64,000 nt of DNA from contig OZ038378.1 in the NCBI GenBank assembly GCA_964036045.1, positions 162,006,001-162,070,000 on the forward strand, given 5' to 3'. The notes beneath the pieces are model-generated. The model worked only from the letters and a program-made list of their open reading frames with translations. It made no database searches and was not told the origin of the DNA. The DNA comes from Eutreptiella sp. 'Long Island Sound 2002'. Lineage: Eukaryota; Protista; Euglenida. This document shows, piece by piece, positions 2,291 through 39,119 of the stretch (positions are counted from its first letter, which is position 1; each line of letters opens with the position of its first letter). Both the position numbers and the translations under genes were made by a program.

Positions 2291-2899
2291 CTGTGCAAGA
2301 CCTTGCCGCAGCCGCCGGATCGCCACCTGCACCGCGTTGTCCGGGGCATCGCTGGGGCTGGGGGCGGTCTGGGGCAGCCCGCGGGCGGTGGGGGTCGAAG
2401 GACGCGGAAACTGCGGCGTCGAGGGGCGCACCGTTGGCGTCGAGGGGCGGGGGTACTGCGGAGGGCGGGGGCCCGGGCCGGAGCCGCTGGCGCTGGAGGC
2501 GTTGGAGCTGAACGACAGCCGCCGCACGGGCGGCGGCTGCGGCCTGTCCGCGTCCGGGGGCCCGGCCTCCGACGACGGCGGCGGGAGGCCAGGCTCCGAC
2601 GGGGCCTGCGGAGGCGGCGGGGGCTCCGAGGGAGGCCCCGGGGGCAGGGCGGGGGGGTCGATGGGGGACGGGGGACCGGACGTGCCCTCCGAGGCCTCGG
2701 GGGACACGACGAGGGGGACGGCGGGGCCAAAGAACTGCGCGTGGACGAGGGCGGGGGGCACGCCCCGGCGGTGGAGGCTCGCCCCGAGCGACTGCATGAA
2801 GGCGGCGGGGCCGCAGAGGTAGTACTCGTACTCGGCGCAGCCGAAGCCGCTGTGCTCGTCGGGCAGGAGCTGGAACACGGCTTGCGGCGTGATGCGGCC
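2291..2899 (-). CDS. Exon 16: end of reductase 2 + Pro/Ser-rich tail
   Basis: GRIT...[11 protein letters not shown]...[14 protein letters not shown] followed by a Pro-rich tail. Acceptor cccatgcacag|GGC; probable donor CAG|GTGCGC at 2290. No next exon was found in the window. Confidence 0.85.
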
Positions 2900-38800: not shown

Positions 38801-39119
38801 CCAGAAGTACGATCGCCACGTCCGCCGGTCCGTGCGTCATGACGTCCGGAGCTCCCCCCGGAAAGGAGTCCCCAGGCTGCTGCGATGGTGGCCTCTCCCA
38901 ATGCACTTGTGCGACGACGTCTGTGAGCAAGGTGCCTGCCATTAGCCACGAAAACTCCGACTTGCACCGGACGACACAGGACATCTTCCCGTCCATCGAG
39001 GCTGGGGCTTTCCTGATCACCTTGAGAAATCGGTCACTTGGCAGCTTTGCAGAGATGTGCTCATCCGGCACCGTGACTTCAAGCACTGAACTCTGCTTTG
39101 GACCCATGAGCAAGATCGT
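2291..39119 (-). CDS. 16-exon gene: DUF218 domain + two tandem flavohemoglobin modules (globin-FAD-NAD x2) with coiled-coil/Pro-rich linkers; 3' end unresolved
   Basis: Exons 39119-38733, 37942-37486, 32344-32247, 31770-31575, 29931-29766, 29085-28946, 28490-28309, 24791-24664, 24019-23823, 22707-22570, 20345-20206, 17457-17317, 9817-9381, 7548-6321, 5432-4851, 2899-2291. Every donor/acceptor pair matches in phase. Joins restore flavohemoglobin motifs, e.g. FEPETAQ|[15 protein letters not shown]|[14 protein letters not shown]|[14 protein letters not shown]|GRIT. Confidence 0.8.
3805..3973. repeat. (GGGA)n microsatellite
   Basis: Direct reading. Confidence 0.95.
4402..4670. repeat. (ACTACACC)n octamer satellite
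   Basis: Direct reading, with ACTACATC variants. Confidence 0.95.
4851..5432 (-). CDS. Exon 15: FAD- and NAD-binding domains of module 2
   Basis: [62 protein letters not shown]. Acceptor C-tract + cgcgcag|AAC; donor GCG|GTGTGC. Confidence 0.92.
5876..6093. mobile_element. MITE with 17-bp terminal inverted repeats
   Basis: gcagggatgcattggaa ... ttctaatgcatccctgc (one mismatch). Related copies at about 21692-21937 and 28668-28874 (opposite orientation). Confidence 0.75.
6321..7548 (-). CDS. Exon 14: coiled coil, Pro-rich linker and complete globin 2; in-frame TGA at 6909-6911
   Basis: Acceptor cgtcgcag|G (phase 2); donor ACG|[26 protein letters not shown]...[18 protein letters not shown]...DAWDLG...AEREQQL aligns almost without gaps to the Hmp globin. 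The middle (about 6850-7280) reads better in another frame. Confidence 0.75.
8463..8590 (+). repeat. Dispersed repeat family R2
   Basis: ccgggaacacccct...acagaagcgtgcatgatccattcaaaacagcatc...gtgcagaattcagg recurs at about 14755-14900 (+) and about 39175-39312 (-). Confidence 0.75.
8760..8893. repeat. (CA)n microsatellite
   Basis: Direct reading. Confidence 0.95.
9381..9817 (-). CDS. Exon 13: coiled-coil-like segment + Pro/Ala-rich linker
   Basis: Acceptor gctgtgctgcgcag|TTG; donor AG|GTGTGC (phase 2). Encodes [19 protein letters not shown] followed by a Pro/Ala/Ser-rich stretch; GC-rich. Confidence 0.65.
11500..11745. repeat. (ACAAAC)n-type hexamer satellite
   Basis: Direct reading. Confidence 0.9.
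11745..14310 (-). mobile_element. Second, internally deleted copy of the same Penelope-like RT family
   Basis: LYVLAKAK...FRGISASP (resembling the PLE PKIHK...RPIVS region), [16 protein letters not shown], and [10 protein letters not shown] matching GQILSSLAW in the first copy; several stops and frameshifts. Confidence 0.55.
14954..16340. mobile_element. Foldback element with about 455-bp inverted arms and a non-coding spacer
   Basis: About 14954-15411 is the near-identical reverse complement of about 15875-16340. No clear target-site duplication. Confidence 0.8.
17317..17457 (-). CDS. Exon 12: helical linker
   Basis: Acceptor ctttcgccttcag|CCC; donor CAG|GTACTC; phase 0/0. [31 protein letters not shown] continues into the helix of exon 13. 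Confidence 0.6.
18260..18645. mobile_element. MITE-like element with about 28-bp inverted termini
   Basis: aaaattgctttgcg(g)nATGGCA versus TGCCAT(c)ngcaaagcaatttt; related ends near 29525 and 42155/42790. Confidence 0.55.
20206..20345 (-). CDS. Exon 11: end of reductase 1 + linker
   Basis: [18 protein letters not shown] matches the flavohemoglobin C-terminal GVxxxxIHyExFGP motif. Acceptor ggcgcag|GG; donor CAG|GTACGT. Confidence 0.85.
21311..21476. repeat. 43-bp tandem repeat, 4 copies in AABB variant order
   Basis: aaagtgtccccatgc... starts at 21311, 21354, 21397 and 21440. Confidence 0.9.
21692..21937. mobile_element. Copy of the 5876 MITE, interrupted by a fragment of the R1 repeat
   Basis: Same internal sequence (ccagccactgtccccctgacgccaagtgccggcttcaa); R1 fragment at about 21720-21765. 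Confidence 0.65.
22570..22707 (-). CDS. Exon 10: NAD-binding domain 1
   Basis: [12 protein letters not shown]...[19 protein letters not shown] carries a YLCGP-like motif. Acceptor ctctcag|GC; donor G|GTGTGC. Confidence 0.8.
23823..24019 (-). CDS. Exon 9: NAD-binding domain 1
   Basis: (S)[12 protein letters not shown]...[22 protein letters not shown]...FHFAAWLSE aligns with Hmp SAGVGQTPMLAML...WFHAAENGDVHAFADEV. Acceptor tccag|C; donor G|GTCTCC. Confidence 0.8.
24262..24567. mobile_element. MITE-like element with about 45-bp inverted termini
   Basis: cccgcggcccagtgcaactccgggggaggagggcccttcgagcc versus ggctcgaagggcccccctcccccggagttgcaatggaccgcggg. Confidence 0.6.
24664..24791 (-). CDS. Exon 8: end of FAD domain 1
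   Basis: Acceptor tttgttttcgcggtgcag|ATG; donor AG|GTCTGT. Encodes [15 protein letters not shown]...DRPLVVV. Confidence 0.7.
27459..27744. repeat. 58-bp tandem repeat, about 5 near-identical copies
   Basis: ggctacatcacccctgccttctcgggggtccccaatcgaaggggaccacatcagaagt starts at 27459, 27517, 27575, 27633 and 27691. Confidence 0.95.
28309..28490 (-). CDS. Exon 7: FAD-binding domain 1
   Basis: [13 protein letters not shown]...RRHYVSDGP...[14 protein letters not shown] resembles PGQY...RQYSLSDAP...KREEGG.VS. Acceptor tctgtcatcgcag|GG. The donor TCT|GTGCTG is the least certain boundary in the gene. Confidence 0.65.
28668..28874. mobile_element. Inverted copy of the 5876 MITE
   Basis: tgcattggaa ... 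ttccaatgcatc termini; body is the reverse complement of the 5876 copy. Confidence 0.65.
28946..29085 (-). CDS. Exon 6: globin 1 end / FAD domain 1 start
   Basis: [47 protein letters not shown] is a close match to the flavohemoglobin GGWxGxRxF linker. Acceptor ctgcag|A; donor G|GTGTGC. Confidence 0.9.
29766..29931 (-). CDS. Exon 5: globin 1 helices F-H
   Basis: [34 protein letters not shown]...[12 protein letters not shown], with proximal His and G5 Tyr. Acceptor ccctttctctgtctcag|GG; donor AG|GTCTGC. Confidence 0.85.
30103..30335 (+). repeat. Dispersed repeat family R1 (230-350 bp)
   Basis: tgtgtgacattccgtcgggt...gcatgttgcgtcgggtcgct...cgttcgcggagcccagtagttgg. Other copies at about 9050-9275, 21945-22300, 22820-23170 and 25025-25530, all in the same orientation. 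Confidence 0.8.
31575..31770 (-). CDS. Exon 4: globin 1 helices A-E
   Basis: [37 protein letters not shown]...[13 protein letters not shown] aligns with Hmp residues about 9-76. Acceptor ctctgctctgcag|ATC; probable GC donor AAG|GCATGC. Confidence 0.85.
32247..32344 (-). CDS. Exon 3: linker + start of globin 1 A helix
   Basis: Acceptor ctgtgtgtcctccag|GA (phase 1, matches exon 2); donor CAG|GTGCAT. Ends LIFEPETAQ, resembling the Hmp N-terminus MLDAQTIA. Confidence 0.7.
32900..35270 (+). mobile_element. Degraded LINE 5' part (ORF1 remnant + APE endonuclease) inside intron 2
   Basis: [36 protein letters not shown] are APE motifs. Upstream remnant ends KRKRNDGAR, like ORF1 at 54200. Confidence 0.75.
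35935..36155. repeat. (CTG/CTA)n triplet tract followed by (CAATAT)n
   Basis: Direct reading. Confidence 0.9.
37486..37942 (-). CDS. Exon 2: DUF218 (YdcF/SanA/ElyC-like) core
   Basis: Acceptor gtaccgtag|GTC; donor GAC G|GTGTGA. Encodes [47 protein letters not shown], which follow the order and spacing of the DUF218 motifs. Confidence 0.85.
38733..39119 (-). CDS. Exon 1 (first detected): unknown segment + start of DUF218 domain
   Basis: Pyrimidine tract + AG (tcttctttatcttcgtgtgtacag) at 39120; donor CAG|GTCGTG. Encodes [10 protein letters not shown]...ARMNKAAQ, matching the DUF218 D-A-I-V-V-L-G...R-L-x-x-A motif. Confidence 0.7.

Follow-up and report, generated by a model that had tools for sequence, protein, structure and literature searches.

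A DUF218 gene and a probable two-module flavohemoglobin gene lie next to each other in a Eutreptiella genome

Two adjacent genes on the minus strand

We analysed a 64,000-nucleotide (nt) stretch of DNA from the euglenid Eutreptiella sp. 'Long Island Sound 2002' (NCBI GenBank assembly GCA_964036045.1, contig OZ038378.1, positions 162,006,001 to 162,070,000 of the forward strand; hereafter the window), which is GC-rich (52-74%) and intron-rich. A preliminary description of this DNA had assigned 16 minus-strand exons to a single gene, fusing a DUF218 domain to two complete tandem flavohemoglobins (FHbs). The minus-strand exons with fitting phases were retained in our analysis, but the resulting model distributes them, 2 + 14, over two adjacent same-strand genes, one encoding a DUF218 protein and the other two FHb modules (Table 1). 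We regard it as probable that the DUF218 gene is separate and that the two FHb modules are fused in one polypeptide. The first gene would consist of two exons (39119-37466, minus strand; stop codon 37468-37466) and encode a stand-alone YdcF-type DUF218 protein of 283 amino acids (aa). The second would comprise at least 14 exons, from 32344 to at least 2291 (minus strand), with translation starting in exon 3 (ATG 32321), probably after spliced-leader addition at the acceptor 32344. Its predicted product is a single polypeptide of at least 1438 aa, in which FHb module 1 (residues ~20-412), a linker of ~485 residues that is partly coiled-coil-like and partly P/A-rich, FHb module 2 (~899-1296) and a P/S-rich tail follow one another; the tail stops at a splice donor, so that further exons would follow.

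To map the modules, E. coli hmp was fetched and used for tblastn against the window, together with an FHb profile hidden Markov model (HMM) built locally from Hmp and 14 FHb representatives from the representative search. Both approaches revealed two full-length FHb modules, each a collinear set of pieces on the minus strand, at 32.3-20.2 kb (FHb1; pieces 31776-31570, 29938-29774, 29078-28944, 28491-28390, 24764-24666, 24048-23848 and 20352-20284) and at 6.8-2.3 kb (FHb2; pieces 6755-6333, 5435-4854 and 2845-2717). The order globin, FAD-binding, NAD-binding over ~400 aa was found in both modules, with collinear HMM positions 3-402 and 10-402. The exon boundaries of the modules define GT-AG introns with matching phases throughout and one GC-AG intron after exon 4, whose donor (AAAG/GCATGC at 31575/31574) was chosen because it reproduces the Hmp spacing exactly, the nearest GT donor adding 11 residues. 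The phase matching reported in the preliminary description thus held at every homology-supported intron, and the joins between exons 4/5, 5/6, 8/9, 9/10 and 10/11 bring back Hmp-like spacing. Since the middle of FHb1 is weakly conserved and the spliced-alignment program over-fitted there, these exons were curated by hand; a candidate extra FHb1 exon (25804-25651) and a long read-through of exon 7 were dropped, and a 7-codon extension of exon 7 restores Hmp-like spacing. Searches of the window with the FHb2 exons found no similarity to FHb1, indicating that the two modules are not recent tandem duplicates.

Transcription was assessed in sequencing runs. In an estuary metatranscriptome (X12), a 217-nt contig matches 32247-32326 with 0 mismatches and departs from the genomic sequence precisely at 32247, the donor predicted for exon 3, indicating that exon 3 is transcribed and spliced in the expected way. 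Runs X1, X2 and X13 contain all sampled words of a 1.65-kb exon-plus-intron stretch including intron 1, and the depth of X1 is even (~9x) across introns; these three runs are therefore DNA, not RNA. Runs X3 and X4 held nothing at this locus.

Table 1 Exons of the DUF218 gene and of the flavohemoglobin gene
Feature	Positions	Strand	Support or remark
DUF218 exon 1	38733..39119	-	ATG 39107; exon 1/2 junction confirmed by intron-less relative (contig L003)
DUF218 exon 2	37466..37942	-	stop 37468-37466 included; Pfam DUF218 E 9e-13; C-terminal end and stop shared with P0159 (L003)
Exon 3, probable 5' exon of the FHb gene	32247..32344	-	ATG 32321; RNA contig leaves the genomic sequence at 32247
Exon 4, globin 1 N-terminal half	31575..31770	-	GC-AG intron follows
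Exon 5, globin 1 C-terminal half with proximal His	29766..29931	-	Pfam Globin
Exon 6, globin-to-FAD linker and start of FAD domain 1	28946..29085	-	Hmp tblastn, FHb HMM
Exon 7, FAD domain 1, RHYV motif	28357..28490	-	extended to donor GAC/GTGTGC
Exon 8, end of FAD domain 1	24664..24791	-	
Exon 9, NAD domain 1, degenerate SARFGLA motif	23823..24019	-	
Exon 10, NAD domain 1, YCVCGD motif	22570..22707	-	
Exon 11, FHb1 C-terminus and 28 more codons	20206..20345	-	ends at donor CAG/GTACGT
Exon 12, linker	17317..17457	-	top coding score against 2426 null AG..GT open reading frames
Exon 13, linker: coiled-coil-like start, then P/A/S-rich	9381..9817	-	donor CAG/GTGTGC, phase 2
Large exon: coiled coil, P/A-rich linker, globin 2	6321..7548	-	Pfam Globin; frame of contig L004
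Exon 15, FAD and NAD domains of FHb2	4851..5432	-	Hmp tblastn E 1e-21; HMM E 3e-43
Exon 16, FHb2 C-terminus and 142-codon P/S-rich tail	2291..2899	-	ends at strong donor, not stop

The two flavohemoglobin modules are likely linked in one gene

The homology-supported exons have GC contents of 0.70/0.50/0.88 at the three codon positions (GC1/2/3), which makes codon bias usable as a coding signal. We derived a codon log-odds model from these exons and compared the candidate linker exons with a null set made up of every AG..GT open interval of comparable length within the introns. The score of exon 12 (17457-17317) exceeded those of all 2426 null candidates, only 1 of 2910 scored higher than exon 13 in its short form, and the bias of the linker exons starts at their acceptors and ends at their donors. 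Exon 13 contains no in-frame Met, and in exon 12 none occurs before codon 39 or in the open frame that precedes the exon; because the first 38 codons are coding-like (+13.4) yet Met-less, translation must enter exon 12 from an upstream exon. At the other side of this junction, exon 11 runs 28 codons beyond the FHb1 C-terminus to the donor CAG/GTACGT, which ranks in the top 2.5% of GT sites and has phase 0, matching exon 12, and the codon bias is lost directly after it. Pfam found no domain in the linker open reading frames (ORFs). A (GCN GTN)n run reading VAVAV/TATAT lies at 9259-9360.

Downstream, the bias of exon 13 is kept to a strong phase-2 donor (CAG/GTGTGC) at 9381/9380, which fits the acceptor 7549/7548, where a strong coding block (7559-7230) starts sharply. 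Exon 13 probably runs to 9381 and then joins a 7548-6321 exon. The linker exons 12 and 13 of the preliminary description are coding-like; exon 13 is probably longer than had been given, and this ~1.23-kb exon, with its coding block, was missing from the earlier list.

A contig of another ENA assembly of the same DNA (L004, ctg7929_21x_l) is 99.95% identical to the window over 16.1 kb, the sole differences being six homopolymer lengths, at 7242, 6840, 6822, 5438, 4089 and 3449. Those at 7242, 6840 and 6822, of 1 nt each, interrupt the large exon's frame in the window sequence. The L004 sequence has one open frame that leads from the acceptor 7549/7548 via a coiled-coil-like segment and a ~190-residue P/A-rich stretch into globin 2, with a third-position GC content of 0.87-1.0 over most of its length and at least 250 linker codons continuous with globin 2. 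Because this frame is continuous and the globin-2 exon, in the window too, has no Met-led start of its own, we treated 7548-6321 as a single exon and regard the in-frame stop that the window shows at 6911 as a probable homopolymer artefact. Other ORFs of the window assembly may suffer from the same kind of break.

With the large exon taken from L004, the spliced model from ATG 32321 to exon 16 spans 4314 nt, or 1438 codons, without a stop, and links both FHb modules through coding-like exons in one continuous ORF. The encoded protein gave two full-length matches to the FHb HMM (residues 20-412, E 1e-57; residues 899-1296, E 2e-80), as the preliminary description had led us to expect. Taken together, the codon bias, the lack of start codons in the linker exons, the splice sites and phases, and the uninterrupted exon joining linker and globin 2 make it likely that FHb1 and FHb2 are linked in one gene, and this part of the earlier claim is supported indirectly.

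Several points weigh against this conclusion. The training set of the codon model comprises 949 codons, all from this locus, and the large exon depends on a second assembly of the same DNA, whose homopolymer lengths are assumed here to be the correct ones. No RNA read spans 20206/17457, 17317/9817 or 9381/7548 in the runs examined. The acceptor of exon 12 has a slightly lower score than the trusted cis-acceptors and could be a spliced-leader acceptor, and FHb1 and FHb2 are not close paralogues, differing in intron density and third-position GC content. The 3' end of the gene, with its stop codon, was not found, and the rest of the window holds no further coding-like exon.

Some of these points would also fit three separate co-oriented genes: DUF218, an FHb1 gene that stops at 20115-20113, and an FHb2 gene with a long N-terminal extension, whose mRNA begins by spliced-leader trans-splicing at 17457, or in an undetected 5' exon, and is translated from the exon 12 Met (39th codon). 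The 5' ends of euglenid mRNAs are normally made by spliced-leader trans-splicing, so any acceptor could be a 5' end, and both the modest exon 12 acceptor and the missing RNA across the join are as expected of separate transcripts. The first 38 codons of exon 12, however, are coding-like before any Met; FHb1 would bear a 59-residue tail whose last 31 codons lack codon bias; and the high-ranking exon 11 donor lies, in matching phase, exactly where the bias ends. On balance we consider three genes unlikely, and retain a single FHb gene in what follows.

At its 3' side, exon 16 ends at 2291 with a donor in the top 0.5%, where the codon bias stops. The position that had been taken as the end of the gene is thus a splice donor and not a stop codon, so the 3' end of the gene is open. 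Beyond the window start, another 2.1 kb read from the ENA contig contains no coding-like exon; further domains may lie beyond exon 16. GT/CA-type microsatellites occur near the window start (1-2100). Along the minus strand from 39 to 2 kb, the third-position GC content of the coding exons climbs from ~0.6-0.7 (DUF218 exon 1, FHb1 exons 4-6) to 0.94-0.98 (FHb2), a trend that tracks the regional GC content (0.52 to 0.74).

The DUF218 gene very probably ends before the flavohemoglobin exons

The ORF at 37942-37469 (minus strand) matches Pfam DUF218 (PF02698) with E 9e-13 and 48.7 bits, against a gathering cut-off of 27.6, and its nearest protein-atlas clusters belong to the YdcF family. A polypyrimidine-AG acceptor at 39120/39119, 5' of the ATG 39107, is the probable spliced-leader acceptor of this gene. 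Its product resembles YdcF-type DUF218 proteins (E. coli YdcF; SanA, ElyC) in its above-threshold Pfam match, its stand-alone nature and its 283 aa, the usual length of stand-alone YdcF proteins, and differs from them in being encoded by a eukaryotic, intron-containing gene and in carrying a ~95-residue unconserved N-terminal region.

A homologue search retrieved a relative (P0159, 67% identity) on an 829-nt marine metagenome contig (L003; ENA ERZ23498367, a SOLA marine metagenome scaffold). This contig encodes both DUF218 exons contiguously, without an intron, which confirms the join between exons 1 and 2. The alignment reaches the last residue, the relative ending in ...YLEQGLTGLD-stop and the window gene in ...GVTGLD-stop. 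The final T-G-L-D is specified by different synonymous codons in the two sequences (ACG/ACT, GGG/GGA, CTT/CTC and GAC/GAT). At the remaining position of the last five, the residue itself differs (V in the window gene, L in L003), and the similarity ends at the stop. No GT is present in L003 at the position of the donor 37486, which lies 18 nt before the DUF218 stop and from which the preliminary description had spliced into exon 3. Because the C-terminus and stop are conserved through synonymous changes, the last codons, which would be intronic if 37486 were a donor, are under selection at the protein level. This contradicts the earlier proposal of a DUF218 output domain fused to the haem/flavin modules: the shared C-terminus and stop, and the absence of a GT at 37486 in the relative, indicate that DUF218 is a separate 283-aa protein. 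Overall, we consider it very probable that there is no fusion between DUF218 and the FHb gene.

A fused DUF218-FHb-FHb protein, at least as an alternative isoform, would arise if the exon 2 donor 37486 were joined to the exon 3 acceptor 32344. The phases match (1/1), no stop interrupts the frame between 32344 and the exon 3 donor, and the donor 37486 (ACG/GTGTGA, in the top 5.5% of GT sites) resembles the G/GTGTGC donors common at this locus. Against it, the five codons after this donor and the stop are kept at the protein level in a relative that lacks the donor; 283 aa is typical of a stand-alone protein; the acceptor 32344 is weak, scoring lower than all 13 trusted acceptors; and exon 3 upstream of ATG 32321 shows no coding signal, 28% of null candidates scoring as high. 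The DUF218 frame thus reaches its own stop and was not found to continue into the globin. No RNA spans 37486/32344 in the runs examined, and X12, which shows exon 3, has zero depth on DUF218 exon 2, weak evidence given its patchy coverage. Most simply, 32344 is the spliced-leader acceptor of the FHb gene. The opposing observations are that the X12 contig stops 18 nt short of this acceptor, with neither a spliced leader nor exon 2 seen, and that L003 ends 165 nt after the DUF218 stop; a minor fused isoform could still occur in this species, and we give the fusion little credence overall.

Neither a word-based homologue search with DUF218 exon 1 nor a JGI metagenome scan with exon 2 found a relative. 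L003 seems to carry another intron immediately 5' of its VDVAIVLLG motif, where there is no in-frame Met; as it also lacks intron 1 of the window gene, intron positions differ between these two euglenid-like genomes. Very high-copy repeats lie at 37000-37450 and 32800-33000 (word depth ~10^4 against ~9 in the flanks in the DNA run X1; also present in the RNA run X12), one of them directly 3' of the DUF218 stop codon.

Both modules have rebuilt distal pockets

We compared the residues of the two modules in an alignment with 14 other full-length FHbs, namely E. coli Hmp and 13 database representatives (Table 2). The Tyr B10/Gln E7 pair, which forms the nitric oxide (NO) dioxygenase pocket and is present in 14/14 of the other aligned FHbs, is replaced in both modules, making classical NO dioxygenation unlikely.

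Table 2 Functional residues of the two modules compared with Hmp
Position or motif	Hmp	Module 1	Module 2
Proximal set F8/G5/H23	His, Tyr, Glu	kept	kept
B10	Tyr	Phe	Trp
CD1	Phe	Phe	Tyr
E7	Gln	His	Leu
E11	Leu	Phe	Tyr
FAD motif	RQYS	RHYV	RQYA
NAD motif	SAGVGQTP	SARFGLA (degenerate)	SAGLGAVG (partly kept)
C-terminal motif	CFGP	VLGP	FFGP

Judged by these motifs, the NAD(P)H site of module 1 appears degenerate and the reductase of module 2 largely intact, so that module 2 looks like a working reductase-haem unit and module 1 like a haem domain with a weakened reductase. That one or both modules are decaying pseudogene remnants, with the long ORF an artefact of GC-rich sequence, is very improbable: the degenerate NAD/FAD motifs of module 1, the atypical distal pockets and the frame-breaking homopolymer differences of the window copy would fit such decay, but a third-position GC content of 0.9-1.0 is confined to exons with sharp boundaries, 1438 codons run without a stop, both modules keep the proximal His/Tyr/Glu set, and splicing from exon 3 to exon 4 is seen in environmental RNA as a contig leaving the genome at 32247.

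The predicted protein would therefore be an NAD(P)H-driven two-haem redox protein rather than a classical NO dioxygenase. In such a protein, module 2 could serve as the competent reductase-haem unit, to which module 1 would be tethered as a haem unit that binds O2 or a ligand or has a regulatory role; this tether, with its coiled-coil-like segment, would suggest cooperation between the units, or oligomerisation. As a tentative proposal, which we put forward with considerable reserve, the giant protein may tether unit 1, with its myoglobin-like pocket (Phe-B10/His-E7) and a NAD(P)H site that no longer works, to unit 2, whose reductase is intact and whose pocket is crowded with aromatic residues. 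The two would then act within one molecule as sensor and enzyme or as an electron relay, with the coiled-coil linker possibly oligomerising and more domains perhaps lying beyond the window.

Relation to known systems

In the globin census (PMC1457004), FHbs are described as stand-alone chimeras of ~400 aa. Both modules share with Hmp, yeast Yhb1 and Giardia gFlHb the order of 3-on-3 globin, FAD_binding_6 and NAD_binding_1 over ~400 aa per module, and they keep His F8, Tyr G5, Glu H23, the RxY flavin motif and the C-terminal (F/L)GP. Unlike known FHbs, they occur as two modules in one predicted chain, ~485 residues apart; the Ser of RxYS is lost in both (RHYV in module 1, RQYA in module 2), and GxGxxP is missing from module 1 and present in altered form in module 2.

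A search of 1.84 billion representatives with exon 15 found no close orthologue (best identity 40-42%) and no long protein that matched twice; the best matches were bacterial FNR-fold fusions with MOSC, PNPOx or Fer2 domains. A word-based homologue search with the 480-aa ORF around exon 15 was swamped by low-complexity words, and a JGI metagenome scan with the globin-1 exon 4 found no relative. In the literature searched, tandem FHbs are not described and DUF218 is not mentioned together with flavohemoglobin. A tandem architecture was thus found neither in the exon 15 search nor in this literature, and a two-module FHb would be a new arrangement of known FHb domains.

Several copies of a unit in one long ORF are familiar from the Euglena polyproteins of LHCPII and the RuBisCO small subunit. 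In those polyproteins, short decapeptides link near-identical units, which are directed to the plastid and cleaved, whereas the units here are highly divergent, separated by a ~485-residue linker with a coiled-coil-like part, and no targeting peptide or cleavage motif was identified.

If the model is correct, this would be a natural two-module FHb in which both distal pockets have been rebuilt and one reductase is apparently out of action. Such a protein could be used to study how haem/flavin units are repurposed, possibly for O2 or redox sensing or for electron relay between units. The locus also illustrates that same-strand euglenid neighbours can appear fused when they are separate, an in-phase GT near a stop codon being insufficient evidence of fusion, and that homopolymer errors in this assembly can conceal large exons.

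Other features of the window

A relic of the euglenid spliced leader (TTTCTGAGTGTCAATTTTTTTTCG, 1 mismatch, 0 expected by chance) lies at 55879-55902 (minus strand) and is followed on the same strand by a 393-aa ORF at 55798-54617; the dinoflagellate spliced leader is absent from the window, in keeping with a euglenid source. Pfam found no domain in the ORFs near the relic, including the 393-aa ORF, and the two may together represent a retroposed trans-spliced mRNA or a long interspersed nuclear element (LINE). At 915-817 (minus strand), a weak match to the C-terminal FNR-like part of the FHb HMM (E 0.045) shows no codon bias and is probably due to chance. On the plus strand, a long CTN/Leu-coding run occupies 35923-36063, and the sole stretch with coding-like codon bias that is antisense to neither an exon nor a simple repeat is found at 62199-62321.

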